Origin: Macrostomum hystrix
Lineage: Eukaryota; Animalia; Platyhelminthes
DNA length: 64,000 bases
Assembly (NCBI GenBank): GCA_950097015.1
Contig: CATNEN010000007.1
Location: forward strand, 3,472,001 to 3,536,000
Direction: 5' to 3'
In this document: one piece after another, positions 1 to 23,865 of the stretch
Numbering within the stretch: the first letter of the stretch is position 1
How the letters are laid out: every line of letters starts with the position of its first letter
Program-made: the position numbers and the translations under genes
Notes under the pieces: model-generated
What the model saw: the letters and a program-made list of their open reading frames with translations, nothing else
Told to the model about the DNA's origin: nothing
Database searches by the model: none

Positions 1-160
1 CACCCCTGTCTCTCCGATTCTACCCCTGTCTCTCCGATTCTACCCCTGTCTCTCCGATTCTACCCCTGTCTCTCCGATTCTACCCCTGTCTCTCCGATTC
101 TACCCCTGTCTCTCCGATTCTACCCCTGTCTCTCCGATTCTTCCCCTGTCTCCCCGATTT
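1..160. repeat. 20-bp minisatellite (TCTCCGATTCTACCCCTGTC)n, truncated by window start
   Basis: About 8 near-perfect copies; same unit family as 7330-9030. Confidence 0.95.
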
Positions 161-169
161 CATTCCCTC

Positions 170-3100
170 TCGCTAAGATTATGTCCCTCATACACAGATT
201 CTATTCTTTTTCACTCAGATTCTATTCCTTCTCGGTCACATTCTATTCCCTCTCGGTCAGATTCTATTCCCTCTCGCTCAGATTCTATTCCTTCTCGCTC
301 AGATTCTATTCCTTCTCGGTCAGATTCTATTCCCTCTCGGTCAGATTCTATTCCCTCTCGCTCAGATTATATTCCTTCTCGCTCAGATTCTATTCCTTCT
401 CGGTCAGATTCTATTCCCTCTCGTCAGGTTCTATTCCTTCTCGGTCAGATTCTATTCCCTCTCGCTCAGATTATATTCCTTCTCGCTCAGATTCTATTCC
501 TTCTCGCTCAGATTCTATTCCTTCTCGGTCAGATTCTATTCCCTCTCGTCAGGTTCTATTCCTTCTCGGTCAGATTCTATTCCCTCTCGCTCAGATTATA
601 TTCCTTCTCGCTCAGATTCTATTCTTTCTCGCTCAGATTCTATTCCTTCTCGGTCAGATTCTATTCCCTCTCGTCAGGTTCTATTCCTTCTCGGTCAGAT
701 TCTATTCCCTCTCGCTCAGATTATATTCCTTCTCGCTCAGATTCTATTCCTTCTCGCTTAGATTCTATTCCTTCTCGGTCAGATTCTATTCCCTCTCGTC
801 AGGTTCTATTCCTTCTCGGTCAGATTCTATTCCCTCTCGCTCAGATTATATTCCCTCTCGGTCAGATTATATTCCCTCTCGCTCAGATTCTATTCCCTCT
901 CGCTCAGATTCTATTCCTTCTCGCTCAGATTCTATTCCTTCTCGCTCAGATTCTATTCCTTCTCGGTCAGATTCTATTCCCTCTCGTCAGGTTCTATTCC
1001 TTCTCGGTCAGATTCTATTCCCTCTCGCTCAGATTATATTCCCTCTCGGTCAGATTCTATTCCCTCTCGGTCAGATTCTATTCCCTCTCGCTCAGATTCT
1101 ATTCCTTCTCGCTCAGATTCTATTCCCTCTCGTTCAGATTCTATTCCTTCTCGGTCAGATTCTATTCCCTCTCGGTCAGATTCTATTCCTTCTCGGTCAG
1201 ATTCTATTCCCTCTCGCTCAGATTATATTCCTTCTCGCTCAGATTCTATTCCTTCTCGCTCAGATTCTATTCCTTCTCGGTCAGATTCTATTCCCTCTCG
1301 TCAGGTTCTATTCCTTCTCGGTCAGATTCTATTCCCTCTCGCTCAGATTATATTCCTTCTCGCTCAGATTCTATTCCTTCTCGCTCAGATTCTATTCCTT
1401 CTCGGTCAGATTCTATTCCCTCTCGTCAGGTTCTATTCCTTCTCGGTCAGATTCTATTCCCTCTCGCTCAGATTATATTCCCTCTCGGTCAGATTCTATT
1501 CCCTCTCGCTCAGATTCTATTCCCTCTCGCTCAGATTCTATTCCTTCTCGCTCAGATTCTATTCCTTCTCGGTCAGATTCTATTCCCTCTCGGTCAGATT
1601 CTATTCCCTCTCGCTCAGATTCTATTCCTTCTCGGTCAGATTCTATTCCCTCTCGTCAGGTTCTATTCCTTCTCGGTCAGATTCTATTCCCTCTCGTTCA
1701 GATTCTATTCCCTCTCGGTCAGATTCTATTCCTTCTCGCTCAGATTCTATTCCTTCTCGGTCAGATTCTATTCCCTCTCGGTCAGATTCTATTCCCTCTC
1801 GCTCAGATTATATTCCTTCTCGCTCAGATTCTATTCCTTCTCGGTCAGATTCTATTCCCTCTCGTCAGGTTCTATTCCTTCTCGGTCAGATTCTATTCCC
1901 TCTCGCTCAGATTATATTCCTTCTCGCTCAGATTCTATTCCTTCTCGCTCAGATTCTATTCCTTCTCGGTCAGATTCTATTCCCTCTCGTCAGGTTCTAT
2001 TCCTTCTCGGTCAGATTCTATTCCCTCTCGCTCAGATTATATTCCCTCTCGGTCAGATTCTATTCCCTCTCGGTCAGATTCTATTCCCTCTCGCTCAGAT
2101 TCTATTCCTTCTCGCTCAGATTCTATTCCTTCTCGGTCAGATTCTATTCCCTCTCGGTCAGATTCTATTCCCTCTCGCTCAGATTCTATTCCTTCTCGGT
2201 CAGATTCTATTCCCTCTCGTCAGGTTCTATTCCTTCTCGGTCAGATTCTATTCCCTCTCGTTCAGATTCTATTCCCTCTCGGTCAGATTCTATTCCTTCT
2301 CGCTCAGATTCTATTCCTTCTCGGTCAGATTCTATTCCCTCTCGGTCAGATTCTATTCCCTCTCGCTCAGATTATATTCCTTCTCGCTCAGATTCTATTC
2401 CTTCTCGCTCAGATTCTATTCCTTCTCGGTCAGATTCTATTCCCTCTCGTCAGGTTCTATTCCTTCTCGGTCAGATTCTATTCCCTCTCGCTCAGATTAT
2501 ATTCCCTCTCGGTCAGATTCTATTCCCTCTCGGTCAGATTCTATTCCCTCTCGCTCAGATTCTATTCCTTCTCGCTCAGATTCTATTCCTTCTCGGTCAG
2601 ATTATATTCCCTCTCGCTCAGATTCTATTCCCTCTCGCTCAGATTCTATTCCTTCTCGCTCAGATTCTATTCCTTCTCGCTCAGGTTCTATTCCTTCTCG
2701 GTCAGATTCTATTCCCTCTCGGTCAGATTCTATTCCCTCTCGCTCAGATTCTATTCCTTCTCGGTCAGATTCTATTCCCTCTCGTCAGGTTCTATTCCTT
2801 CTCGGTCAGATTCTATTCCTTCTCGCTCAGATTATATTCCTTCTCGCTCAGATTCTATTCTTCTCGCTCAGATTCTATTCCTTCTCGGTCAGATTCTATT
2901 CCCTCTCGTCAGGTTCTATTCCTTCTCGGTCAGATTCTATTCCCTCTCGCTCAGATTATATTCCTTCTCGCTCAGATTCTATTCCTTCTCGCTTCAGATT
3001 CTATTCCTTCTCGGTCAGATTCTATTCCCTCTCGTCAGGTTCTATTCCTTCTCGGTCAGATTCTATTCCCTCTCGCTCAGATTATATTCCCTCTCGGTCA

Positions 3101-6100
3101 GATTCTATTCCCTCTCGCTCAGATTCTATTCCCTCTCGCTCAGATTCTATTCCTTCTCGCTCAGATTCTATTCCTTCTCGCTCAGATTCTATTCCTTCTC
3201 GGTCAGATTCTATTCCCTCTCGTCAGGTTCTATTCCTTCTCGGTCAGATTCTATTCCCTCTCGCTCAGATTATATTCCTTCTCGGTCAGATTCTATTCCC
3301 TCTCGGTCAGATTCTATTCCCTCTCGCTCAGATTCTATTCCTTCTCGCTCAGATTCTATTCCCTCTCGTTCAGATTCTATTCCTTCTCGGTCAGATTCTA
3401 TTCCCTCTCGGTCAGATTCTATTCCTTCTCGGTCAGATTCTATTCCCTCTCGCTCAGATTATATTCCTTCTCGCTCAGATTCTACTCCTTCTCGCTCAGA
3501 TTCTATTCCTTCTCGGTCAGATTCTATTCCCTCTCGTCAGGTTCTATTCCTTCTCGGTCAGATTCTATTCCCTCTCGCTCAGATTATATTCCTTCTCGCT
3601 CAGATTCTATTCCTTCTCGCTCAGATTCTATTCCTTCTCGGTCAGATTCTATTCCCTCTCGTCAGGTTCTATTCCTTCTCGGTCAGATTCTATTCCCTCT
3701 CGCTCAGATTATATTCCCTCTCGGTCAGATTCTATTCCCTCTCGCTCAGATTCTATTCCCTCTCGCTCAGATTCTATTCCTTCTCGCTCAGATTCTATTC
3801 CTTCTCGGTCAGATTCTATTCCCTCTCGGTCAGATTCTATTCCCTCTCGCTCAGATTCTATTCCTTCTCGGTCAGATTCTATTCCCTCTCGTCAGGTTCT
3901 ATTCCTTCTCGGTCAGATTCTATTCCCTCTCGTTCAGATTCTATTCCCTCTCGGTCAGATTCTATTCCTTCTCGCTCAGATTCTATTCCCTCTCGCTCAG
4001 ATTCTATTCCTTCTCGCTCAGATTCTATTCCCTCTCGTCAGGTTCTATTCCTTCTCGGTCAGATTCTATTCCCTCTCGCTCAGATTATATTCCCTCTCGG
4101 TCAGATTCTATTCCCTCTCGGTCAGATTCTATTCCCTCTCGCTCAGATTCTATTCCTTCTCGCTCAGATTCTATTCCTTCTCGGTCAGATTCTATTCCCT
4201 CTCGGTCAGATTCTATTCCCTCTCGCTCAGATTCTATTCCTTCTCGGTCAGATTCTATTCCCTCTCGTCAGGTTCTATTCCTTCTCGGTCAGATTCTATT
4301 CCCTCTCGTTCAGATTCTATTCCCTCTCGGTCAGATTCTATTCCTTCTCGCTCAGATTCTATTCCTTCTCGGTCAGATTCTATTCCCTCTCGGTCAGATT
4401 CTATTCCCTCTCGCTCAGATTCTATTCCTTCTCGCTCAGATTCTATTCCTTCTCGCTCAGATTCTATTCCTTCTCGGTCAGATTCTATTCCCTCTCGTCA
4501 GGTTCTATTCCTTCTCGGTCAGATTCTATTCCCTCTCGCTCAGATTATATTCCTTCTCGCTCAGATTCTATTCCTTCTCGCTTAGATTCTATTCCCTCTC
4601 GGTCAGATTCTATTCCCTCTCGTCAGGTTCTATTCCTTCTCGGTCAGATTCTATTCCCTCTCGCTCAGATTATATTCCCTCTCGGTCAGATTATATTCCC
4701 TCTCGGTCAGATTCTATTCCCTCTCGCTCAGATTCTATTCCTTCTCGCTCAGATTCTATTCCTTCTCGCTCAGATTCTATTCCTTCTCGGTCAGATTCTA
4801 TTCCCTCTCGTCAGGTTCTATTCCTTCTCGGTCAGATTATATTCCCTCTCGCTCAGATTATATTCCTTCTCGCTCAGATTCTATTCCTTCTCGCTCAGAT
4901 TCTATTCCTTCTCGGTCAGATTCTATTCCCTCTCGTCAGGTTCTATTCCTTCTCGGTCAGATTCTATTCCTCTCGCTCAGATTATATTCCCTCTCGGTCA
5001 GATTCTATTCCCTCTCGCTCAGATTCTATTCCCTCTCGCTCAGATTCTATTCCTTCTCGCTCAGATTCTATTCCTTCTCGGTCAGATTCTATTCCCTCTC
5101 GGTCAGATTCTATTCCCTCTCGCTCAGATTCTATTCCTTCTCGGTCAGATTCTATTCCCTCTCGTCAGGTTCTATTCCTTCTCGGTCAGATTCTATTCCC
5201 TCTCGTTCAGATTCTATTCCCTCTCGGTCAGATTCTATTCCTTCTCGCTCAGATTCTATTCCTTCTCGGTCAGATTCTATTCCCTCTCGGTCAGATTCTA
5301 TTCCCTCTCGCTCAGATTATATTCCTTCTCGCTCAGATTCTATTCCTTCTCGGTCAGATTCTATTCCCTCTCGTCAGGTTCTATTCCTTCTCGGTCAGAT
5401 TCTATTCCCTCTCGCTCAGATTATATTCCTTCTCGCTCAGATTCTATTCCTTCTCGCTCAGATTCTATTCCTTCTCGCTCAGATTCTATTCCCTCTCGTC
5501 AGGTTCTATTCCTTCTCGGTCAGATTCTATTCCCTCTCGCTCAGATTATATTCCCTCTCGGTCAGATTCTATTCCCTCTCGGTCAGATTCTATTCCCTCT
5601 CGCTCAGATTCTATTCCTTCTCGCTCAGATTTTATTCCTTCTCGGTCAGATTCTATTCCCTCTCGGTCAGATTCTATTCCCTCTCGCTCAGATTCTATTC
5701 CTTCTCGGTCAGATTCTATTCCCTCTCGTCAGGTTCTATTCCTTCTCGGTCAGATTCTATTCCCTCTCGTTCAGATTCTATTCCCTCTCGGTCAGATTCT
5801 ATTCTTTCTCGCTCAGATTCTATTCCTTCTCGGTCAGATTCTATTCCCTCTCGGTCAGATTCTATTCCCTCTCGCTCAGATTATATTCCTTCTCGCTCAG
5901 ATTCTATTCCTTCTCGCTCAGATTCTATTCCTTCTCGGTCAGATTCTATTCCCTCTCGTCAGGTTCTATTCCTTCTCGGTCAGATTCTATTCCCTCTCGC
6001 TCAGATTATATTCCTTCTCGCTCAGATTCTATTCCTTCTCGCTTAGATTCTATTCCCTCTCGGTCAGATTCTATTCCCTCTCGTCAGGTTCTATTCCTTC

Positions 6101-6810
6101 TCGGTCAGATTCTATTCCCTCTCGCTCAGATTATATTCCCTCTCGGTCATATTATATTCCCTCTCGGTCAGATTCTATTCCCTCTCGCTCAGATTCTATT
6201 CCTTCTCGCTCAGATTCTATTCCTTCTCGCTCAGATTCTATTCCTTCTCGGTCAGATTCTATTCCCTCTCGTCAGGTTCTATTCCTTCTCGGTCAGATTA
6301 TATTCCCTCTCGCTCAGATTATATTCCTTCTCGCTCAGATTCTATTCCTTCTCGCTCAGATTCTATTCCTTCTCGGTCAGATTCTATTCCCTCTCGTCAG
6401 GTTCTATTCCTTCTCGGTCAGATTCTATTCCCTCTCGTTCAGATTCTATTCCCTCTCGGTCAGATTCTATTCCCTCTCGCTCAGATTCTATTCCTTCTCG
6501 CTCAGATTCTATTCCTTCTCGGTCAGATTCTATTCCCTCTCGGTCAGATTCTATTCCCTCTCGCTCAGATTCTATTCCTTCTCGGTCAGATTCTATTCCC
6601 TCTCGTCAGGTTCTATTCCTTCTCGGTCAGATTCTATTCCCTCTCGTTCAGATTCTATTCCCTCTCGGTCAGATTCTATTCCTTCTCGCTCAGATTCTAT
6701 TCCTTCTCGGTCAGATTCTATTCCCTCTCGGTCAGATTCTATTCCCTCTCGCTCAGATTCTATTCCTTCTCGGTCAGATTCTATTCCCTCTCGTTCAGAT
6801 TCTACCCCTC
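170..6810. repeat. 21-bp minisatellite (CTCG[G/C]TCAGATTCTATTCC[C/T]T)n with periodic 20-bp variant CTCGTCAGGTTCTATTCCTT
   Basis: About 315 units by length. The common units have no stop codon in any + frame, which explains the 2212-aa ORF. Confidence 0.97.
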
Positions 6811-7329
6811 CCACACTAGGAGTGTTAGAATAATCAGCTTGTATTTTCTAACTAAAAGAAAAAGCTAAAAAAGATATTTAAGAGATTAAAAAAACAATTT
6901 TAAATCTCCTATTCCATTCTGTCTGACTAAAAGCGGCTAAATTATTTTAATTGAGAAGGACAAACTGGAGAAGACAGATTTTGAACAGTAATTTCTTTTA
7001 CGGAATTTCAAATTGAAGATTCAGAAAAAAATCTACACAAAAGGCATCCGTCGACTTCCTTTGGGATTGACAAACGGCGAGGCCTTTTTAATTAGCAAAT
7101 TCTTTAGCCTCACAAACTTGAGGCGTTTGAAGGATCGAAAACTGTGTCATGCAAATTTATATCAAGTCTGAGTTATGAAGCAGACGATAGCATAGCAACC
7201 TCTGAGACCTGATTGAGAAATCTGACACTTGATAGATCTGCTTCGTTTTCTTTTACGCAGAAGCAGCTGTCAGCAATGACTCGTTAGGCAAAGAAAAGTA
7301 CGCAAATTTTGAGAGGTGCCAGAGGCCTA

Positions 7330-9030
7330 TCTCACCGATTCTACCCCCGATTCTACCCCAGGCCCTTAAGTTCTACTCCCATCTCTCTGATTCTACCCCT
7401 GTCTCTCCAATTATACCCTTGTCTTTCCGATTCTACCCCTGTCTCTCCAATTCTACCCCTGTCTATCCAATTCTACCCCTCTCTATCCAATTCTACCCCT
7501 GTCTCTCCAATTGTACCCATGTCTTTCCGATTCTACCCCTGTCTATCCAATTCTACCCCTGTCTCTCCGATTCTACCCCTGTCTATCCAATTCTTTCCCT
7601 GTGTCTCCGATTCTACCCCTGTCTATCTAATTCTACTCCTGTCTCTCCGATTCTACCCCTGTCTATCCAATTCTACTATTGTCTCTTCGATTCTACCCCT
7701 GTCTCTCCGATTCTACCCCTGTCTATCCAATTCTACCCTTGTCTCTCCGATTCTACCCCTGTCTATCCAATTCTACTATTGTCTCTTCGATTCTACCCCT
7801 GTCTCTCCGATTCTACCCCTGTCTATCCAATTCTACCCTTGTCTCTCCGATTCTACCCCTGTCTATCCAATTCTTTCCCTGTCACTCCGATTCTACCCGT
7901 CTATCCAATTCTACCCTTGTCTCTCCGATTCTACCCCTGTCTATCCAATTCTACTCCTGTCTCTCCGATTCTTCCCCTGTCTTTCCGATTCTACCCCTGT
8001 CTCTCAAATTCTACCCCTGTCTATCCAATTCTACTCCTGTCTCTCCGATTCTTCCCCTGTCTCTCCGATTCTACCCCTGTCTATCCAATTCTACTCTTGT
8101 CTCTCCGATTCTTCCCCTGTCTATCCAATTCTACTCCTGTCTCTCCGATTCTTCCCCTGTCTCTCCGATTCTACCCCTGTCTCCCAAATTCTACCCCTGT
8201 CTATTCAATTCTACCCCTGTCTCTCAAATTCTACTCGATTCTACCCCGGTATCTCTAAATCTACCCGTCTCCCCAATTCTACCCCTCTCTATCCAATTCT
8301 ACCCCAGTCTATCCAAGTCTACGCCTGTCTCTCCAATTGTACCCATGTCTTTCCGATTCTACCCCTGTCTCTCCGATTCTACCCCTGTCTATCCAATTCT
8401 ACCCTTGTCTCTCCGATTCTACCCCTGTCTATCCAATTCTTTCCCTGTCACTCCGATTCTACCCCGTCTATCCAATTCTACCCTTGTCTCTCCGATTCTA
8501 CCCCTGTCTATCCAATTCTTTCCCTGTCACTCCGATTCTACCCGTCTATCCAATTCTACCCTTGTCTCTCCGATTCTACCCCTGTCTATCCAATTCTACT
8601 CCTGTCTCTCCGATTCTTCCCCTGTCTTTCCGATTCTACCCCTGTCTCTCAAATTCTACCCCTGTCTATCCAATTCTACTCCTGTCTCTCCGATTCTTCC
8701 CCTGTCTCTCCGATTCTACCCCTGTCTATCCAATTCTACTCTTGTCTCTCCGATTCTTCCCCTGTCTATCCAATTCTACTCCTGTCTCTCCGATTCTTCC
8801 CCTGTCTCTCCGATTCTACCCCTGTCTCTCAAATTCTACCCCTGTCTATCCAATTCTACTCCTGTCTCTCCGATTCTACCCCTGTCTATCCAATTCTACT
8901 CTTGTCTCTCCGATTCTTCCCCTGTCTATCCAATTCTACCCCTGTCTATCCAATTCTACCCCTGTCTCTCCAATTCTACTCGATTCTACCCCGGTATCTC
9001 TAAATCTACCCCGTCTCCCCAATTCTACCC
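7330..9030. repeat. 20-bp minisatellite (GTCT[C/A]TCC[G/A]ATTCTACCCCT)n
   Basis: About 85 degenerate units. A distinctive variant block at about 8225-8285 recurs at about 8970-9030, indicating an internal duplication of about 750 bp. Confidence 0.95.
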
Positions 9031-9816: not shown

Positions 9817-10650
9817 CTGTCTAACACACTGTCTAACACCCTGTCTAACATACTGTCTAACACACTGTCTAACACACTGTCTAACACACTGTCTAACACC
9901 CTGTCTAACACACTGTCTAACACACTGTCTAACACATTGTCTGACACCATGTCTAACAGGATGCCATCATGTCTAACAGGATACCATCATTTCTAACAGG
10001 ATACCATCATGTCTAACAAGATACCATCATGTCTAACAGGATACCCTGATGTCTAACAAGATACCATCATGTCTAACAGGATGCCATCATGTCTAACACA
10101 CTGTCTAACACAATGTCTAACACACTGTCTAACACCCTATCTAACACACTGTCTAACACCCTGTCTAACACACTGTCTAACACACTGTCTAACACACTGT
10201 CTAACACACTGTCTAACACACTGTCTAACACACTGTCTAACACACTGTCTAACACACTGTCTAACACACTGTCTAACACATTGTCTGACACCATGTCTAA
10301 CAGGGTGCCATCATATCTAACAGGATAACATCATATCTAACAAGATACCATCATGTATAACAGGATACCATCATGTCTAACAGGATACCATCATGTCTAA
10401 CAGGATACCATCATGTCTAACAAGATACCATCATGTCTAACAAGATACCATCATGTCTAACAGGATACCATCATGTCTAACAAGATACCATCATGTCTAA
10501 CAGGATACCATCATGTCTAACAAGATACCATCATGTCTAACAAGATACCATCATGTCTAACAAGATACCATCATGTCTAACAGGATACCATCATGTCTAA
10601 CAAGATACCATCATGTCTAACAGGATACCATCATGTCTAACAGGATGCTA
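9817..10650. repeat. Composite array: 12-bp (CTGTCTAACACA)n alternating with 20-bp (CCATCATGTCTAACAGGATA)n in ABAB blocks
   Basis: 12-mer at about 9817-9945 and 10090-10290; 20-mer at about 9945-10090 and 10290-10650. Both share the core TGTCTAACA. Confidence 0.93.
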
Positions 10651-11780: not shown

Positions 11781-12105
11781 TAGTCAGTTGATCAGGTAGT
11801 CAGTTGATCAGGTAGTCAGCTGATCAGGTAGTCAGTTGATCAGGTAGTCAGTTGATCAGGTAGTCAGCTGATCAGGTAGTCAGTTGATCAGGTAGTCAGC
11901 TGATCAGGTAGTCAGTTGATCAGGTAGTCAGCTGATCAGGTAGTCAGCTGATCAGGTAGTCAGTTGATCAGGTAGTCAGTTGATCAGGTAGTCAGTTGAT
12001 CAGGTAGTCAGTTGATCAGGTAGTCAGTTGATCAGGTAGTCAGTTGATCAGGTAGTCAATTCATCAGGTAGTCAATTCAACAGGTAGTCAGTTGATCAGG
12101 TATTC
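11781..12105. repeat. 16-bp minisatellite (TAGTCAG[T/C]TGATCAGG)n
   Basis: About 20 copies, ending directly before the ORF at 12117. Confidence 0.95.
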
Positions 12106-12116
12106 AGCTGATAGGG

Positions 12117-14819
12117 ATGCTTCCGAAAATCCCGCAGATTTCCCAGTCAGACCCAGCTGACATGAAGAACAGCGGAGGCTTCAGAGCCTGCCGTGAAACC
12201 TTCCCCACAGCACGACAACCGCTTACGCCAATCGTCGCGCACTTCAGCCCCCAACTGCAGGAGTGCCGTCGGGCATTGCGCGAGCTTTCGGCAGTCACGC
12301 TACCATCGAACAACCCGTCGAGAGTCTCGTTGAGCCCGCTGCAGCGGCAACAATCTGTAGACATAACGGAGCGCGACATTCGCCGGACCCTTGTCGAGCT
12401 CCGCTGCCGTCTTGCTCGAGATCTGGCGCCACTGCTGGAGGAGCCGCGCCTGGCCTCCCGCATCTGGCGTCGACAATTCGGCCGCGACTGCGACACGGGC
12501 GACGACTCGACGACGGAACTGGCCTCAACAAAAATCCGAGTGACGCCTGACATGCCTCCGGAGCCTGGTGACATTGTCGAGTTGCGCTACTACCTACTGC
12601 CGCACCTGGTGGTGGCCGAGACGGTCGAGCGAAATCTGGCGGACGGCCGTCCAAAGCTCCTGCGCGCAATTCACTACGGCCGGCCGGAACACTTCTCCAG
12701 CGTCCGTATCATACGCCAAGATTTCCAGCTGGACGGCGGCAGCGGTTGCGGCGCGTTTGTCCGACGCTTCCCGACTGCCGCTTGCCGGCCGGCCAGCGAG
12801 ACTGTCGAGCGAGCGCGCAGCTGCATCGGCCAGACAGGCCACTCGATGATCGGCAACAATGCCAGCCAGTTCGCCCGCTGGTGCAAGCTGCACTCCGCTG
12901 GCCAAGTCGTGCAGCGCTACGTCTCCCTGACTGCCTACGAAAACTACGCGGAACTGCGCGCCGGTGACCATATCGAATGGCCGGCCAGCGCTGCCATCCT
13001 GTCCACCGATGCCGTCCAATCATCACTCACAACGTCGGCTCCGGCGGGCTCAGTGCACGCTGAGGTTCGAGCCGTCGGTCGGCGGCACAACCTGCTGGCG
13101 CTGCGGCTGTTGATGTCGTCGAATTCGGTCAATGCGGCTCGGCTGGGGTTCGCTCACAGCCGCACTTTCGCTGGCCGATCGGAAAAGTGCCGGGTCAGCC
13201 GGCACCGGCTTGCGGTCGGACCAACTCCGGCGCTGCCGCTGGATCGTCTAACGCGTCGAGCCGACGCCTTTATTGGCGCCGTCTTCCAGACTGGCTCAGT
13301 GACGCCGCTGGCGTTTGCCGCCGAGCTGGCCGGCTCGCGAGATCCGCTGGCTGCGCTGGCGATGCCCGACGGCGCCACGGCCAGCGCCGCCGCCAACGTC
13401 AGCGGCGTTGAATCTGTTCAACTTAACGAGCTGCACATCGGCGACGTTGTTTCCTTCGACGGAGAGCCACCAGGTCTGGTGACAGGGTTGCAGCGGTCTG
13501 GAGACTCAGAGGACGGCTCGGCCATTGTGACCGTGACGCTGCTAATCTACTGTCACTCGCCAATCGATTCCGATCGCGAGCCAGTCCGAGAATTTCGCTG
13601 CTTTGTCGACTGTCGCAAAGCCGGCCAGCATCAGCGGATCCGAGTGTCGGTTCAGCATGGCGACGTCGCCTGCCCGCTAACGACGGCCAGCGTTCACTAC
13701 TTCGACGGCTACGCCGTTCAACGTGTTGTCTCCTTTGACCAGCTCGTGCCAGGCTGTGTCATCAGCTACCGGAAGCACGTCAGCGACATTGGCGTCGACG
13801 ACTCCGACGAGAATGATTTCGACGAGGATGACGACTGCCATCGGCTGGCGTTCCGGCATGCCGTTGTCGGCGACAGCGTCGGCGACGGTCGATCGAATTC
13901 GGAGGTGGCTCTCATCTACTTCTCGCCTGGCCTGGGCCACATTCGCCGAGTCCGACGATCGCTGGACCTGGCCAAGGATGAGGTCTTCATCGTCGAGTAC
14001 AACAATGGACGGGCGCGTCCGCTGGAGGAAAGCCTCGCTAGGGCGCTGCGTCGACTGAACGGCTGCGGCGGCTACACAGTCGACCAGCTGGAGGATGCGG
14101 AAGCCTGGCGGCTCGGAGCCAAGTACGACCTGCGGACCAACAACGGCCGGCAGTTCGCCCGCTGGTGCCGTCAGTGCGACCAATTCGACATCGACGCCGG
14201 TCCGCACGATCTGGACGCAGGCGGCGTTGAATGGCTTGAGGCGTGGCAGTCCAGGCTTTGGGTCCGTCAGCTGCCGGAGTCCAGCCAGCAGATGCGCTAC
14301 AGCCTGCACCGCTGCCTGCAGGTTATGGGCAAGTTCTCCGACACCAGCCCGCTGTCTGTCATGGCGCCGCTTCTGACCGCCTGCCTCTTCATCTGCTCTG
14401 CCGCTGACTCCGCTGTCGCCGCAGCCGCCGCCCAACACCAGCTGGCCGTCCGGCGTGCCCTCTGTCCGGGCTTCTTCTCGGCTCTGGCCGCCTCCGTCGC
14501 GGCTTTAGCGAATCCAACACCCAACACCACCGTCGTCGATGACACCGTAGGGGTCGGTGATGTCGACAGCAACCCCGATGAGGTCGGCGACAACAACAGC
14601 ACCAGCATCGTTGGCGGAGCTGACGGTGCCGACGTTCGAGAGGCTGGCAAATTTATCGACACCGATGAGGAGCCGGCGGACGTTCGCGCATTTCTGGTGT
14701 GCCTCGCCGCCTCAGTGTCGGGCGCAGCGCTTGACTTCGGCATGGACCGCGTCGGCGGTGGCAGCGGCGTCGGTTTCTCGAAACAGCTGGCGGATCTCAG
14801 GCAGTTTTTCCGACCATGA
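12117..14819 (+). CDS. Intronless ~900 aa protein with tandem LRAT/HRASLS-like (permuted NlpC/P60, 'NC') domains lacking the catalytic Cys
   Basis: Long non-repetitive, GC-rich ORF. Repeat 1 reads PGDIVELR..PHLVV..IHY...TVERARSCIG..HSMIGNNASQFARWC and repeat 4 reads PGCVISY..RHAVV...LARALRRL...YDLRTNNGRQFARWC. Both match the LRAT/NC pattern PGD..H..H..RA..G..Y.L..NCEHFA.WC. The start could be Met16 (12162). Confidence 0.8.
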   Translation: MLPKIPQISQSDPADMKNSGGFRACRETFPTARQPLTPIVAHFSPQLQECRRALRELSAVTLPSNNPSRVSLSPLQRQQSVDITERDIRRTLVELRCRLARDLAPLLEEPRLASRIWRRQFGRDCDTGDDSTTELASTKIRVTPDMPPEPGDIVELRYYLLPHLVVAETVERNLADGRPKLLRAIHYGRPEHFSSVRIIRQDFQLDGGSGCGAFVRRFPTAACRPASETVERARSCIGQTGHSMIGNNASQFARWCKLHSAGQVVQRYVSLTAYENYAELRAGDHIEWPASAAILSTDAVQSSLTTSAPAGSVHAEVRAVGRRHNLLALRLLMSSNSVNAARLGFAHSRTFAGRSEKCRVSRHRLAVGPTPALPLDRLTRRADAFIGAVFQTGSVTPLAFAAELAGSRDPLAALAMPDGATASAAANVSGVESVQLNELHIGDVVSFDGEPPGLVTGLQRSGDSEDGSAIVTVTLLIYCHSPIDSDREPVREFRCFVDCRKAGQHQRIRVSVQHGDVACPLTTASVHYFDGYAVQRVVSFDQLVPGCVISYRKHVSDIGVDDSDENDFDEDDDCHRLAFRHAVVGDSVGDGRSNSEVALIYFSPGLGHIRRVRRSLDLAKDEVFIVEYNNGRARPLEESLARALRRLNGCGGYTVDQLEDAEAWRLGAKYDLRTNNGRQFARWCRQCDQFDIDAGPHDLDAGGVEWLEAWQSRLWVRQLPESSQQMRYSLHRCLQVMGKFSDTSPLSVMAPLLTACLFICSAADSAVAAAAAQHQLAVRRALCPGFFSALAASVAALANPTPNTTVVDDTVGVGDVDSNPDEVGDNNSTSIVGGADGADVREAGKFIDTDEEPADVRAFLVCLAASVSGAALDFGMDRVGGGSGVGFSKQLADLRQFFRP

Positions 14820-15194
14820 GTCACGTGACCGATTTGATGGCCTGACGCGTTCTTTATTAGAGTGCTACGCTTGACCTATTCGATAGCACAAAAATATTTT
14901 TTCGTTCGTACATTTTTGCCTACTAATCAGTAGTATACTGCGCTGTCATCCTTCTCCCATTAGGCAGGTATCAAAGTAACAGAAGTAGAAAACGCTCACA
15001 TTTCTAAAAATAGATCCGCACTGATTTTTCTGCAGCCCTCTGCGCACTTTATTCTAATTGATTTTTCTGTTCGCTATAAAACATTTCGACCGGCTTAGTT
15101 AGCTGTGGCATTTTTACTAAGTAACAGAATTCAATACCGACTGCTTGTGTTTCGTTTAGGCCTTTAGCATGGTATCCAGGTCGTTGCCGTGCAA

Positions 15195-15790
15195 GGATAG
15201 AAGTGTGAGAAAATCGAGGATAGAAGGGTGAGAAAATGGAGGATGGAAGGGTGAGAAAATGGAGGATAGAAGTGTGAGAAAATGGATGATGGAAGGGTGA
15301 GAAAATGGATGATGGAAGGGTGAGAAAATGGACGATAGAATGGTGAGAAAATGGAGGATAGAAGGGTGAGAAAATTGAGGATAGAAGGGTGAGAAAATGG
15401 AGGATAGAAGGGTGACAAAATGGAGGATAGAAGAGTGAGAAAATGGAGGATAGAAGGGTGAGAAAATTGAGGATAGAAGCGTGAGAAAATGGAGGATAGA
15501 AGGGTGAGAAAATGGAGGATAGAAGGGTGAGAAAATGGAGGATAGAAGCGTGAGAAAATGGAGGATAGAAGGGTGAGAAAATGGATGATGGAAGGGTGAG
15601 AAAATGGAGGATAGAAGCGTGAGAAAATGGAGGATAGAAGGGTGAGAAAATGGATGATGGAAGGGTGAGAAAATGGAGGATAGAAGGGTGAGAAAATGGA
15701 GGATAGAAGCGTGAGAAAATGGAGGATAGAAGGGTGAGAAAACGGAGGATAGAAGGGGTAGAAATCCTAGACTGGATGGTGAGAAAATTG
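15195..15790. repeat. 23-bp purine-rich minisatellite (TGGAGGATAGAAGGGTGAGAAAA)n
   Basis: About 25 copies, degenerating at the right end. Confidence 0.93.
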
Positions 15791-16267: not shown

Positions 16268-19200
16268 GATTGTAAACACACAGCTTGTAAACCCACAGCT
16301 TGTAAACCCACAGCTTGTAAACCTAAAGCTTGTAAACCCACAGCTTGTAAACCCGCAGCTTGTAAACCTAAAGCTTGTCAACCTAAAGCTTGTAAACCTA
16401 AAGTTTGTAAACCTAAAGCTTGTAAACCCACAGCTTGTAAACCCACAGCTTGTAAACCCACAGCTTGTAAACCCCGAAGATTGTAAACCCACAGCTTGTA
16501 AACCCACAGCTTGTAAACCCACAGCTTGTAAACCCCGAAGATTGTAAACCCACAGCTTGTAAACCCACAGCTTGTAAACCCACAGCTTGTAAACCTAAAG
16601 CTTGTAAACCCACAGCTTGTAAACCTAAAACTTGTAAACCCACAGCTTGTTAACCCACAACTTGTAAACCCACAGCTTGTAAACCCATAGCTTGTAAACC
16701 CACAGCTTGTAATCCCACAGCTTGCAATCCCACAGCTTGTAAACCCACAGCTTGTAAACCTAAAACTTGTAAACCCACAGCTTGTAAACCCACAACTTGT
16801 AAACCCACAGCTTGTAAACCCACAGCTTGTAAACATAAAGCTTGTAAACCCACAGCTTGTAAACCCACAGCTTGTAAACCCACAGCTTGTAAACCCACAG
16901 CTTGTAAACCCACAGTTTGTAAACCCACAGCTTATAAACCCAACAGCTTGTAAACCCACAGCTTGTAAACCCACAGCTTGTAAACCCACAGCTTGTAAAC
17001 CCACAGCTTGTAAACCCACAGCTTGTAAACCCACAGCTTGTAAACCCCGAAGATTGTAAACCCACAGCTTGTAAACCCACAGCTTGTAAACCCACAGCTT
17101 GTAAACCGACAGCTTGTAAACCCACAGCTTGTAAACCCACAGCTTGTAAACCCCGAAGATTGTAAACCCACAGCTTGTAAACCCACAGCTTGTAAACCCA
17201 CAGCTTGTAAACCCACAGCTTGTAAACCCACAGCTTGTAAACCCCGAAGATTGTAAACCCACAGCTTGTAAACCTACAGCTTGTAAACCCACAGCTTGTA
17301 AACCTAAAGCTTGTAAACCCACAGCTTGTAAACCCATAGCTTGTAAACCCACAGCTTGTAATCCCACAGCTTGCAATCCCACAGCTTGTTAACCCACAGC
17401 TTGTAAACCTAAAACTTGTAAACCCACAGCTTGTAAACCCACAACTTGTAAACCCACAGCTTGTAAACCCACAGCTTGTAAACCCACAGCTTGTAAACCC
17501 ACAGCTTGTAAACTTACAGCTTGTAAACCCACAGCTTGTAAACCGACAGCTTGTAAACCCACAGCTTGTAAACCCACAGCTTGTAAACCCCGAAGATTGT
17601 AAACCCACAGCTTGTAAACCCACAGCTTGTAAACCTAAAGCTTGTAAACCCGCAGCTTGTAATCCCACAGCTTGCAATCCCACAGCTTGTAAACCCACAG
17701 CTTGTAAACCTAAAACTTGTAAACCCACAGCTTGTAAACCCACAACTTGTAAACCCACAGCTTGTAAACCCACAGCTTGTAAACCGACAGCTTGTAAACC
17801 TAAAGCTTGTAAACCCACAGCTTGTAAACCGACAGCTTGTAAACCCACAGCTTGTAAACCCACAGCTTGTAAACCCCGAAGATTGTAAACCCACAGCTTG
17901 TAAACCCACAGCTTGTAAACCTAAAGCTTGTAAACCCGCAGCTTGTAATCCCACAGCTTGCAATCCCACAGCTTGTAAACCCACAGCTTGTAAACCTAAA
18001 ACTTGTAAACCCACAGCTTGTAAACCCACAACTTGTAAACCCACAGCTTGTAAACCCACAGCTTGTAAACCGACAGCTTGTAAACCTAAAGCTTGTAAAC
18101 CCACAGCTTGTAAACCCACAGCTTGTAAACCCACAGCTTGTAAACCCCGAAGATTGTAAACCCACAGCTTGTAAACCCACAGCTTGTAAACCCACAGCTT
18201 GTAAACCGACAGCTTGTAAACCCACAGCTTGTAAACCCACAGCTTGTAAACCCCGAAGATTGTAAACCCACAGCTTGTAAACCCACAGCTTGTAAACCCA
18301 CAGCTTGTAAACCCACAGCTTGTAAACCCACAGCTTGTAAACCCCGAAGATTGTAAACCCACAGCTTGTAAACCTACAGCTTGTAAACCCACAGCTTGTA
18401 AACCTAAAGCTTGTAAACCCACAGCTTGTAAACCCATAGCTTGTAAACCCACAGCTTGTAATCCCACAGCTTGCAATCCCACAGCTTGTTAACCCACAGC
18501 TTGTAAACCTAAAACTTGTAAACCCACAGCTTGTAAACCCACAACTTGTAAACCCACAGCTTGTAAACCCACAGCTTGTAAACCCACAGCTTGTAAACCC
18601 ACAGCTTGTAAACTTACAGCTTGTAAACCCACAGCTTGTAAACCGACAGCTTGTAAACCCACAGCTTGTAAACCCACAGCTTGTAAACCCCGAAGATTGT
18701 AAACCCACAGCTTGTAAACCCACAGCTTGTAAACCTAAAGCTTGTAAACCCGCAGCTTGTAATCCCACAGCTTGCAATCCCACAGCTTGTAAACCCACAG
18801 CTTGTAAACCTAAAACTTGTAAACCCACAGCTTGTAAACCCACAACTTGTAAACCCACAGCTTGTAAACCCACAGCTTGTAAACCGACAGCTTGTAAACC
18901 TAAAGCTTGTAAACCCACAGCTTGTAAACCGACAGCTTGTAAACCCACAGCTTGTAAACCCACAGCTTGTAAACCCCGAAGATTGTAAACCCACAGCTTG
19001 TAAACCCACAGCTTGTAAACCTAAAGCTTGTAAACCCGCAGCTTGTAATCCCACAGCTTGCAATCCCACAGCTTGTAAACCCACAGCTTGTAAACCTAAA
19101 ACTTGTAAACCCACAGCTTGTAAACCCACAACTTGTAAACCCACAGCTTGTAAACCCACAGCTTGTAAACCGACAGCTTGTAAACCTAAAGCTTGTAAAC

Positions 19201-21090
19201 CCACAGCTTGTAAACCCACAGCTTGTAAACCCACAGCTTGTAAACCCACAGCTTGTAAACCCACAGCTTGTAAACCCACAGCTTGTAAACCCACAGCTTG
19301 TAAACCCACAGCTTGTAAACCCACAGCTTGTAAACCTTAAGCTTGTAAACCTAAAGCTTGTAAACCCACAGCTTGTAAACCCACAGCTTGTAAACCTAAA
19401 GCTTGTAAACCCACAGCTTGTAAACCCGCAGCTTGTAAACCTAAAGCTTGTAAACCCGCAGCTTGTAAACCTAAAGCTTGTAAACCCACAGCTTGTAAAC
19501 CCCGAAGATTGTAAACCCACAGCTTGTAAACCCACAGCTTGTAAACCCACAGCTTGTAAACCTAAAGCTTGTAAACCCACAGCTTGTAAACCTAAAACTT
19601 GTAAACCCACAGCTTGTAAACCCACAACTTGTAAACCCACAGCTTGTAAACCCATAGCTTGTAAACCCACAGCTTGTAATCCCACAGCTTGCAATCCCAC
19701 AGCTTGTAAACCCACAGCTTGTAAACCTAAAACTTGTAAACCCACAGCTTGTAAACCCACAACTTGTAAACCCACAGCTTGTAAACCCACAGCTTGTAAA
19801 CATAAAGCTTGTAAACCCACAGCTTGTAAACCCACAGCTTGTAAACCCACAGCTTGTAAACCCACAGCTTGTAAACCCACAGTTTGTAAACCCACAGCTT
19901 ATAAACCCAACAGCTTGTAAACCCACAGCTTGTAAACCCACAGCTTGTAAACCCACAGCTTGTAAACCCACAGCTTGTAAACCCACAGCTTGTAAACCCA
20001 CAGCTTGTAAACCCCGAAGATTGTAAACCCACAGCTTGTAAACCCACAGCTTGTAAACCCACAGCTTGTAAACCGACAGCTTGTAAACCCACAGCTTGTA
20101 AACCCACAGCTTGTAAACCCCGAAGATTGTAAACCCACAGCTTGTAAACCCACAGCTTGTAAACCCACAGCTTGTAAACCCACAGCTTGTAAACCCCGAA
20201 GATTGTAAACCCACAGCTTGTAAACCTACAGCTTGTAAACCCACAGCTTGTAAACCTAAAGCTTGTAAACCCACAGCTTGTAAACCCATAGCTTGTAAAC
20301 CCACAGCTTGTAATCCCACAGCTTGCAATCCCACAGCTTGTTAACCCACAGCTTGTAAACCTAAAACTTGTAAACCCACAGCTTGTAAACCCACAACTTG
20401 TAAACCCACAGCTTGTAAACCCACAGCTTGTAAACCCACAGCTTGTAAACCCACAGCTTGTAAACCCACAGCTTGTAAACCCACAGCTTGTAAACCGACA
20501 GCTTGTAAACCCACAGCTTGTAAACCCACAGCTTGTAAACCCCGAAGATTGTAAACCCACAGCTTGTAAACCCACAGCTTGTAAACCTAAAGCTTGTAAA
20601 CCCGCAGCTTGTAATCCCACAGCTTGCAATCCCACAGCTTGTAAACCCACAGCTTGTAAACCTAAAACTTGTAAACCCACAGCTTGTAAACCCACAACTT
20701 GTAAACCCACAGCTTGTAAACCCACAGCTTGTAAACCGACAGCTTGTAAACCTAAAGCTTGTAAACCCACAGCTTGTAAACCCACAGCTTGTAAACCCAC
20801 AGCTTGTAAACCCACAGCTTGTAAACCCACAGCTTGTAAACCCACAGCTTGTAAACCCACAGCTTGTAAACCCACAGCTTGTAAACCCACAGCTTGTAAA
20901 CCTAAAGCTTGTAAACCCACAGCTTGTAAACCCACAGCTTGTAAACCTAAAGCTTGTAAACCCACAGCTTGTAAACCCGCAGCTTGTAAACCTAAAGCTT
21001 GTAAACCCGCAGCTTGTAAACCTAAAGCTTGTAAACCCGCAGCTTGTAAACCTAAAGCTTGTAAACCCACAGCTTGCAATCCTAAAGCTT
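16268..21090. repeat. 15-bp satellite (GCTTGTAAACCCACA)n with 16-bp variant TTGTAAACCCCGAAGA and higher-order duplications
   Basis: About 320 units. It produces the GLQAV/GFTSC/VYKLW ORFs. Confidence 0.97.
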
Positions 21091-21744
21091 GTAGTATATT
21101 TGTAACAAAAGATACTCCTAGCATTTTCTTCATCTCAAATTACAGCCCCATCAAGTGTAATGACAGCTTTCTAAATGTTGCACTAGGAACCCAATGCAGC
21201 GCCACTAAGTGACGTCAAGCAAAAAGAGGCTAGACAGAAAAGTGCAGAAAAAAAATTGTAAGACAAAAATGCTTGCCTCATTGCAGTGCAAGGTCGACAG
21301 CAAAATCTTTGACGCACAGCTAAAATGGCAGCATCTACACACCTGAAAGCTAATTAAAAATGAGACAGGTAGACAGGTCGGGCCGACACAATCAGCTTCG
21401 CATCTTTCTAACCCTCTTAATTTATTATTCTATATTATATAAAATATATTCTCGACTAGCACAATACGAGATGATTAAAAATAAGTGACCATTATTACTG
21501 TGAGCATTCATTCATTTGCACTTACTATTCAATAGGGATTAAGAAGGCCAGAATGTATGGACTTAGTGACGCACCGCTAACTATCATTAAAGTCTGCTCC
21601 TGATGCTGTGTGAGCATGAATAAATTAACTAAATCTATATATTTCATACTTTGCGTTTCCATATCTAAGACGAAAAATATACCTGGTTGAGAACTTCGTC
21701 AAGTTCATGACTTGCTTCAACAATAACAATAAGTTTGGGAAGAC

Positions 21745-22185
21745 TAGTAGGAGAGCGGCCCTGAAGGACTACCGGGAGAGCGGTCCTGAAGGACTAGCGG
21801 GAAAGCGGTCCTGAAGGACTAGCGGGAGAGAGGTCCTGAAGGACTAGCGGGAGAGAGGTCCTGAAGGACTAGCGGGAGAGCGGTCCTGAAGGACTAGCGG
21901 GAGAGAGGTCCTGAAGGACTACCGGGAGAGCGGTCCTGAAGGACTAGCGGGAGAGCGGTCCTGAAGGAATAGCGGGAGAGAGGTCCTGAAGGACTAGCGG
22001 GAGAGAGGTCCTGAAGGACTAGCGGGAGAGAGGTCCTGAAGGACTAGCGGGAGAGAGGTCCTGAAGGACTGGCGGGAGAGCGGTTCTGAAGGACTGGCAG
22101 GAGTCCTGAAGGACTAGTGGGAGAGCGGGAGAGCGGTCCTGAAGGACTGGCGGGAGAGCGGTTCTGAAGGACTAGTGGCAGCGGA
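21745..22185. repeat. 25-bp minisatellite (GGACTAGCGGGAGAG[A/C]GGTCCTGAA)n
   Basis: About 17 copies; each junction contains the inverted repeat GTCCT-GA-AGGAC. Confidence 0.92.
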
Positions 22186-22883
22186 AAGTAAGTAAATGAA
22201 TAATAACACGCAAAGAATTATATTCGCAGAGTTTCAAAATCACATTGAAAGCCACAAACAAAGCGTCAACAAGGTATTGTTTAAATAAAAAACTACATTT
22301 TATTTTTATCGATTCTAAGAATCGATTATTGTGGGGAAATCTCCCCTATAGGCCGAACAACTGAAGCAATGCTTACATTACAATCGCATATGATTGTATA
22401 TAACTACACACTTTCACTGCTAACAAGTTAAATTAAGATCACACAAAGTCGATGCATTGGAAATATCAATATAAAATTGAGACAACAAAACAAACACATG
22501 AAAGTCCAGAAAGCAGATACCATCAATAAGATCAGGAATGATTCACTGTTAATTACGAGATTGAATCACGAAATTTCACTACTGACAAATAAACTTCCAT
22601 TGCAATAATTCCGGCTAAAACTATAATTATCAAGAACGCGGCATCACGAAAGCTTCTTATATGTAATTTGCGGAATCTGTGCATTCAGACTACAGATAAT
22701 ATATAAGCAAAAACTACGAGTATGATACAAGAACAAGAGATCATAATCTTAGTACATCATAGAAGTGGAGCAACAGAACAACATGCGATCGAAAATTGTA
22801 GTACGAGCGTAATATATAGTTATAATACGCGTGGAAAACAATTGAGATGTAACTTCCATTTCAGGGTCAATGAGAGAGAATTT

Positions 22884-23865
22884 AGTGACTCATCGACAGA
22901 GAGTGACTCATCGACAGAGAGTGACTCATCGACAGAGAGTGACTCATCGACAGAGAGTGACTCATCGACAGAGAGTGACTCATCGACAAAGAGTGACTCA
23001 TCGACAGAGAGTGACTCATCGACAGAGAGTGACTCATCGACAGAGAGTGACTCATCGACAGAGAGTGACTCATCGACAAAGAGTGACTCATCGACAGAGA
23101 GTGACTCATCGACAGAGAGTGACTCATCGACAGAGAGTGACTCATCGACAGAGAGTGACTCATCGACAGAGAGTGACTCATCGACAGAGAGTGACTCATC
23201 GACAGAGAGTGACTCATCGACAGAGAGTGACTCATCGACAGAGAGTGACTCATCGACAGAGAGTGACTCATCGACAGAGAGTGACTCATCGACAGAGAGT
23301 GACTCATCGACAGAGAGTGACTCATCGACAGAGAGTGACTCATCGACAGAGAGTGACTCATCGACAGAGAGTGACTCATCGACAGAGAGTGACTCATCGA
23401 CAGAGAGTGACTCATCGACAGAGAGTGACTCATCGACAGAGAGTGACTCATCGACAGAGAGTGACTCATCGACAGAGAGTGACTCATCGACAGAGAGTGA
23501 CTCATCGACAGAGAGTGACCCATCGACAGAGAGTGACTCATCGACAGAGAGTGACTCATCGACAGAGAGTGACTCACTGAGAGGGTGACTCATCGACAGA
23601 GAGTGACTCATCGACAGAGAGTGACTCATCGACAGAGAGTGACTCATCGACAGAGAGTGACTCATCGACAGAGAGTGACTCATCGACAGAGAGTGACCCA
23701 TCGACAGAGAGTGACTCATCGACAGAGAGTGACTCACTGAGAGGGTGACCCACTGAGAGAGTGACTCACTAAAAGGGTGACTCACTGAGAGAGTGACTCA
23801 CTAAAAGGGTGACTCACTGAGAGGGTGACTCACTAAAAGGGCGACTCACTGAGACAGTGACTCAA
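22884..23865. repeat. 18-bp minisatellite (GTGACTCATCGACAGAGA)n
   Basis: About 54 units, highly homogeneous; begins about 30 nt after the kelch stop codon. Confidence 0.97.

Follow-up and report, generated by a model that had tools for sequence, protein, structure and literature searches.

A probably non-catalytic, LRAT-derived protein of four tandem modules in the flatworm Macrostomum hystrix

What kind of protein is encoded by a long open reading frame (ORF) of the flatworm Macrostomum hystrix, in which four tandem repeats recall the LRAT/PLAAT acyltransferases and none carries their catalytic cysteine? The ORF lies in a stretch of 64,000 nucleotides (GenBank assembly GCA_950097015.1, contig CATNEN010000007.1, positions 3,472,001 to 3,536,000 of the forward strand), which we call the window; coordinates are those of the window unless another sequence is named. 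A first-pass annotation had proposed a catalytically dead scaffold made of four LRAT domains, in an architecture that it did not recognise. Our analysis indicates, with a probability of about 0.75, that the window protein is a non-catalytic, LRAT-derived protein and a member of a multi-domain LRAT/PLAAT-like family that has expanded in Macrostomum. All four repeats fall within the one ORF, whose parts are as follows.

12117 to 14819, forward strand: complete single-exon ORF of 900 amino acids (aa) plus stop, from the ORF list, composition, a full-length ortholog and the ratio of nonsynonymous to synonymous substitution rates (dN/dS)
12117 to 12542, forward strand: N-terminal region, aa 1-142, lineage-specific, predicted helical or disordered, without family match
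12543 to 12899, forward strand: repeat 1, complete LRAT/PLAAT-fold domain, aa 143-261, with H163, H186, Ala249 and Cys256
12951 to 13352, forward strand: repeat 2, folded module of beta strands and helix, aa 279-412, LRAT-like only in the hairpin GDH (284-285)...H314-AEV
13434 to 13661, forward strand: repeat 3, probable N-terminal beta half of an LRAT domain, aa 440-515, from hhalign
13737 to 14177, forward strand: repeat 4, degenerate LRAT domain, aa 541-687, with H581, Tyr601, Gly677 and Cys684
14178 to 14816, forward strand: C-terminal tail, aa 688-900, rich in Ala and Ser, three helices of moderate hydrophobicity from Kyte-Doolittle hydropathy and the model

The repeats sit where they had first been placed, and the positions given for their signature and FARWC motifs are correct to the nucleotide. 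The signature [EQ]L.[PAI]G[DC].[IV] occurs at aa 279, 438 and 542 (nucleotides 12951, 13428 and 13740), and repeat 1 opens with the shorter EPGDIV at 12561. NNASQFARWC occupies 12855-12884 in repeat 1 and NNGRQFARWC 14139-14168 in repeat 4. The three signatures compare with a mean of 0.0015 in 20,000 shuffles of the protein, a significance that is overstated, as the pattern was defined post hoc. Self-comparison of the 900-aa protein by BLASTP revealed no internal repeat, even at an E value of 100.

Direct comparison with Pfam LRAT (PF04970) gave 21.8 bits for the whole protein, only over aa 223-258 in repeat 1, and 20.4 bits for repeat 1 alone, both below the cut-off of 24.3 bits; repeats 2, 3 and 4 had no match to this family, and phmmer against PDB sequences found only a chance-level match (0.27) for the whole protein and none for repeats 1 and 4. 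Intermediates nevertheless establish homology to LRAT. An exhaustive search with a profile built from two orthologs, the window protein and its Macrostomum lignano counterpart, returned 79 matches including that counterpart (itself a query row), and 76 of the 78 others carry PF04970. A domain hidden Markov model (HMM), iterated over these matches and then applied to the window protein, detected repeat 1 (aa 150-257, E 1.5e-27) and repeat 4 (aa 575-685, E 6.5e-13); repeat 3 was reached only at E 9 and repeat 2 was undetected. In profile-profile comparisons by hhalign, with profiles made from 12 Macrostomum family members, repeats 1 and 4 matched a broad LRAT alignment at 99.9% and 99.8%, and each other at 99.4%. 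Repeat 3 matched the LRAT alignment at 82.8% over 75 columns, or with realignment at 94.5% over 64 (the first part of the 108), and it matched repeat 4 at 77.7%. For repeat 2 the value was 12%, and realignment brought it to 74-82% over 24-35 columns only, those of the GDH...HAEV hairpin, in which the 12-member family keeps D284 and H285 without exception and H314 almost always. When aa 262-540 were searched with a protein language model, all clusters returned were LRAT, at 0.88, a value that amounts to a lead only.

Repeats 1 and 4 are thus LRAT domains, the latter degenerate, and for these two the proposal of four LRAT domains stands with significant matches. It does not stand for the other two: repeat 3 probably corresponds to no more than the N-terminal beta half of an LRAT domain, and the profiles suggest that repeats 2 and 3 are degenerate, partly LRAT-derived beta modules, the likeness of repeat 2 being at the level of a motif. 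In an AlphaFold2 model of the whole protein, based on the family alignment, four folded blocks with a predicted local distance difference test (pLDDT) score of 70-87 coincide with the four repeats, and the termini are disordered or helical. The permuted papain-like alpha+beta fold of PLAAT/HRASLS proteins was recovered, repeat 1 having the LRAT/PLAAT fold. A separate model of repeats 2 and 3 (aa 262-540) reached a pLDDT of 72.9, with 80-91 in the region of repeat 2, and a predicted template modelling (pTM) score of 0.72; the latter indicates that repeats 2 and 3 pack as one unit. Repeat 4 contains two low-confidence inserts, at aa 555-577 (acidic) and aa 648-675. The acidic one, DIGVDDSDENDFDEDDDC at 13779-13838 (aa 555-574), is inserted after the first strand, ahead of the His strand; it is kept in the M. 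lignano ortholog, absent in the paralogs and modelled with low confidence.

Catalysis by LRAT/PLAAT enzymes runs through a thioester on the cysteine of the NCEHF motif, so that domains with Ala (repeat 1) or Gly (repeat 4) at this place cannot form the acyl-enzyme intermediate. The catalytic triad is H23/H35/C113 in PLAAT numbering (PMC7140883), the nucleophile of LRAT itself being C161, and in our alignment of 281 domains its columns hold His in 189 (first) and 187 (second), and at the nucleophile Cys in 79, Ser in 117 and Ala in 28. Repeat 1 has H163 (12603-12605) and H186 (12672-12674), with Ala249 (12861-12863) in the Cys column. Repeat 4, mapped onto repeat 1 by hhalign, has H581 (13857-13859), Tyr601 in place of the second His (13917-13919) and Gly677 at the nucleophile (14145-14147). 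Repeat 3 possesses neither His and no C-terminal Cys helix, repeat 2 possesses H314 only, with no Cys-helix motif detected, and NCEHF occurs nowhere in the 900 residues. These comparisons bear out both that no repeat has a catalytic Cys and that repeat 1 retains its two His and the FAxWC motif. With repeats 1 and 4 dead and no NNCEHF domain present, the whole polypeptide would therefore be a pseudoenzyme. As for the Cys of FARWC (C256 at 12882-12884 in repeat 1, C684 in repeat 4), it lies seven residues past the nucleophile position and is conserved in 175 of the 281 domains. Since some of these still have the catalytic Cys, it is probably a structural feature of the subfamily and not a substitute nucleophile. 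The other Cys of repeat 1 (C211, C223 and C236) are not conserved across the paralogs.

The loss of the nucleophile is itself conserved. A word-based protein search found one relative, the M. lignano protein BOX15_Mlig014099g2 (P0001; 874 aa, without precomputed Pfam domain), which aligns end to end with 59% identity (BLASTP) and is likewise encoded by a single exon. It keeps NNAGQFARWC and NNGRQFARWC, that is, the same substitutions at the nucleophile, and A249 is invariant in 12 of the 12 Macrostomum family members. Between the two orthologs the Nei-Gojobori method gave a dS of about 1.2 and a dN/dS of 0.22 overall, with 0.32 for the N-terminus, 0.20 for repeat 1, 0.26 for repeat 2, 0.25 for repeat 3, 0.12 for repeat 4 and 0.20 for the tail. 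The ratio being low in every region, the protein is under purifying selection along its whole length. This is a real, selectively maintained gene. The ORF does lie in an island of 62% GC between AT-richer minisatellite arrays, with long ORFs on both strands; it has lost catalytic residues and the paralogs' catalytic domain, and one paralogous locus (L008, below) is broken by a stop, all of which could point to a decaying paralog, or to a chance ORF without function. This is highly improbable, as an intact ortholog matches the intact frame over its full length and no region exceeds a dN/dS of 0.32 at such a dS; we rejected the pseudogene on the dN/dS values, and long antisense ORFs like those over the gene commonly accompany a GC-rich coding region.

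The same constraint could be read as that of a protein that is still an enzyme, a non-canonical hydrolase or acyltransferase in which the pair H163-H186 activates water or a substrate nucleophile, or in which another Cys (C223, C236 or C256) serves as nucleophile. Repeat 1 keeps both His and the conserved motifs that form the pocket, its dN/dS is 0.20, and the bivalve relatives described below have exchanged Cys for Ser, a potential nucleophile, so that the subfamily tolerates change at this site. Ala, however, cannot form the acyl intermediate, and A249 does not vary in the family. Neither C223 nor C236 is conserved in the paralogs, and C256, seven residues along the helix and retained even beside a catalytic Cys, argues for a structural role. 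LRATD2/FAM84B, which keeps H23 and H35 and misses C113, the same state of two His and no Cys, is reported to be without phospholipase A/acyltransferase (PLA/AT) activity (PMC7140883). We thus consider continued catalysis unlikely.

The genome of M. hystrix itself (220 Mb, 42 contigs) revealed at least four further loci with the core of repeats 1 to 4, among them loci on contigs 11 (C11) and 39 (C39), and a fragment of repeat 1 on the contig of the window (C7).

C11:1490243-1493308, forward strand: paralog L007 (3243-6308 of C11:1487000-1495000), intact frame of 1022 aa
C11, at 1484 kb, reverse strand: paralog L008 (2273-5386 of C11:1480000-1488000), near-copy of L007 with an in-frame stop
C39, two loci: paralogs with the repeat 1 to 4 core, without NCEHF
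C7:1443000-1450000, 3001 to 4098, forward strand: repeat 1-like fragment L011, reading GDIIENSYYMFWHPYIVES...VIHYGR

L007 ends in a canonical NNCEHFVNFLIYGR LRAT domain and a hydrophobic tail. The stop in L008 falls directly after the DFAR motif of repeat 4 and leaves pieces of 587 and 450 aa; L008 is a probable pseudogene or assembly error. The two loci stand head-to-head, about 5 kb apart. L011, about 2 Mb from the window, is likely a truncated remnant of the family, and continues straight into a long array of PRFPI/PDSQF peptide repeats. M. lignano has many copies (P0002, P0004, P0008, P0009, P0019, P0024 and P0066).

The Macrostomum paralogs (PAA52141.1, PAA47239.1 and PAA47238.1 of M. lignano, and L007) share with the window protein the four-repeat core, the Ala of repeat 1 and a degenerate repeat 4. 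One group of paralogs, to which these four belong, extends beyond repeat 4 by a fifth repeat, by a canonical LRAT domain with the sequence NNCEHFVN(F/Y)LIYGR, which scores 50-57 bits on Pfam LRAT, and by hydrophobic tail helices. A second group (P0008 and the two loci of C39) has no NCEHF, like the window protein and its ortholog. Neither the NNCEHF domain nor the tail of the former group is present in the window protein, whose own Ala/Ser-rich tail is unrelated and whose identity to the paralogs is 20-24%. On these comparisons the window gene is the all-dead member, in a family in which the others are probably enzymes. That the tail might be a diverged catalytic domain was considered and rejected for want of homology: the last 215 residues match the C-terminal regions of both paralog groups at no more than 0.2% by hhalign, and the C-terminal regions of the two groups match each other at 98.3%.

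A family of this composition could suggest a more specific version of the pseudoenzyme, a regulator acting in trans on the NNCEHF-bearing paralogs, with the core of repeats 1 to 4 mediating hetero-oligomerisation or competition for substrate or membrane sites. The core is indeed common to paralogs that have the canonical domain and to those that lack it, in M. hystrix as in M. lignano, and repeats 2 and 3 model as one compact unit with a pTM of 0.72. The paralogs with NNCEHF are nonetheless on other contigs than the window gene, and identity to them is only 20-24%, so that we regard this version as quite unlikely.

The architecture had been taken as unrecognised, and here the first-pass annotation does not hold: bivalves carry tandem arrays of LRAT-type domains, the Macrostomum paralogs share the four-repeat core, and Cys-less LRAT is known in LRATD2. 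All the named non-flatworm matches that we looked up are bivalve (Potamilus, Sinanodonta, Mytilus, Pinctada, Mya), with the exception of the sea star Patiria. The best matches of repeat 1 outside flatworms are bivalve proteins (Potamilus streckersoni KAK3603616.1, Sinanodonta woodiana KAL3874825.1, Mytilus galloprovincialis VDI83150.1; E 1e-23 to 1e-13). In their layout one His-His-Cys domain stands at the N-terminus, and behind it come arrays of the His-His-Ser type with an occasional His-His-Ala or degenerate domain; the replacement motif in such arrays is N-x-S-x-H-F-x-x-W-C-K. Seven bivalve or unnamed proteins (P0003, P0006, P0007, P0010, P0012, P0030 and P0087) have about 4-11 tandem domains after the His-His-Cys head; total numbers are nine in the Potamilus protein P0003, at least 5-9 in bivalve relatives and up to about 12 in some unnamed database proteins. 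The bivalve repeats keep both His and the WC motif with mostly Ser as nucleophile, and are full-length and readily detected, whereas the window protein is without a Cys domain and has degenerate repeats in its middle. In a quick maximum-likelihood tree of 87 domains (108 columns), whose deep nodes are suggestive only, the Macrostomum repeat 1 domains form one clade (98 in the Shimodaira-Hasegawa-like approximate likelihood ratio test, SH-aLRT) among the bivalve His-His-Ser domains (SH-aLRT 89, not starred), the NCEHF domains at the C-terminus of Macrostomum proteins fall together with the His-His-Cys heads of bivalves (SH-aLRT 89), and repeat 4 of the window protein sits on a long unplaced branch. 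Our literature search returned no paper on Macrostomum LRAT proteins, nor on bivalve LRAT-domain proteins, and the bivalve layout of His-His-Cys and His-His-Ser domains is apparently undescribed.

One might speculate that repeats 1 to 4 represent an undescribed, conserved lophotrochozoan supermodule derived from LRAT, in which the domains without nucleophile (Ser in bivalves, Ala in Macrostomum) would present an acyl chain or substrate to the one catalytic domain, the window protein being a free-standing regulatory copy in trans. We hold this to be doubtful; if true, it would be a type of partnership between pseudoenzyme and enzyme for which the LRAT/PLAAT family has no known example.

Among better-known proteins, PLAAT/HRASLS 1-5 and LRAT (PF04970, a circularly permuted NlpC/P60 family of acyltransferases and phospholipases) have one domain, whereas the window protein has four tandem modules, with the NCEHF Cys replaced by Ala (repeat 1) or Gly (repeat 4), the second His by Tyr (repeat 4), and 16-21% identity to the solved PLAAT/LRAT structures. 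The vertebrate proteins LRATD1 and LRATD2 (FAM84A and FAM84B), which function non-enzymatically, are in the same state as repeat 1, both His and no Cys, a likeness of character state alone. Unlike the multi-module window protein they are single-domain with a proline-rich region, and the Cys was probably lost independently in the two cases.

What a non-catalytic, LRAT-derived protein might do can be sketched along these lines. The His-His pocket of repeat 1 and the constrained repeat 4 may be binding modules for acyl, lipid or peptide ligands, or for partners, the compact unit of repeats 2 and 3 could be a structural spacer, and the protein would act as an adaptor or regulator, with the hydrophobic helices of the tail possibly mediating membrane association. 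Such a role would parallel that of the Cys-less LRATD2/FAM84B, for which a function in vesicle trafficking from the endoplasmic reticulum to the Golgi has been described (PMC8536394).

Several points weigh against this picture. Neither profile nor fold searches make repeats 2 and 3 demonstrable LRAT domains. The model of these two repeats shows no PLAAT-like fold, all Foldseek E values being 0.09 or higher; a fold search over 48,161 chains gave a best Z of 6.0, to inteins, elongation factor P (EF-P) and Tudor-type barrels, none LRAT-like. The model of the whole protein is poor (mean pLDDT 53.6). The retained His pair of repeat 1 and its strong constraint also fit a residual, non-covalent hydrolase chemistry. 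For a membrane role, the tail helices are only moderately hydrophobic and of low confidence (pLDDT below 50), and the role in binding or as a scaffold is one that we purely infer.

The tail helices, at about aa 744-772, 780-798 and 856-875, reach 1.5-1.9 in Kyte-Doolittle windows of 19 residues, and the tail is still constrained, at the dN/dS of 0.20 given above. The N-terminal region (aa 1-142) has no Pfam match, a pLDDT mostly below 50 and a long helix at aa 85-120 in the AlphaFold2 model, and its identity to the M. lignano ortholog is 41%, with the dN/dS of 0.32.

The gene is boxed in by minisatellite arrays, at 4-6804, 7371-8979, 9817-10646, 11781-12112, 15194-15764, 16270-21093 and 21742-23864, among whose units are one of 21 bp in about 326 copies, one of 15 bp in about 320 and one of 16 bp in about 21. 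The 16-bp array stops 5 bp upstream of the ATG at 12117. The arrays are strongly strand-skewed (GC and AT skew of about -0.48 over the first 6 kb) and create long spurious ORFs, for example at 181-6819.

Fold and family are already known, as is the notion of an LRAT domain without Cys, and public databases list the ortholog and paralogs as hypothetical or "LRAT domain-containing" proteins; the finding overturns nothing established. What is new is a multi-module protein of LRAT descent, with no live domain left, in a family that is lineage-specific and includes live members as well. LRAT/PLAAT enzymes act in phospholipid remodelling and in the synthesis of retinyl esters and N-acyl-phosphatidylethanolamines, and LRATD1 and LRATD2 have cancer and trafficking phenotypes whose mechanism is not known. 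The bivalve His-His-Ser arrays raise the same question of function. As Macrostomum is an experimentally tractable model, its family, in which one four-module core occurs both with a catalytic domain and without it, could be a natural system in which to learn what a dead LRAT domain does.

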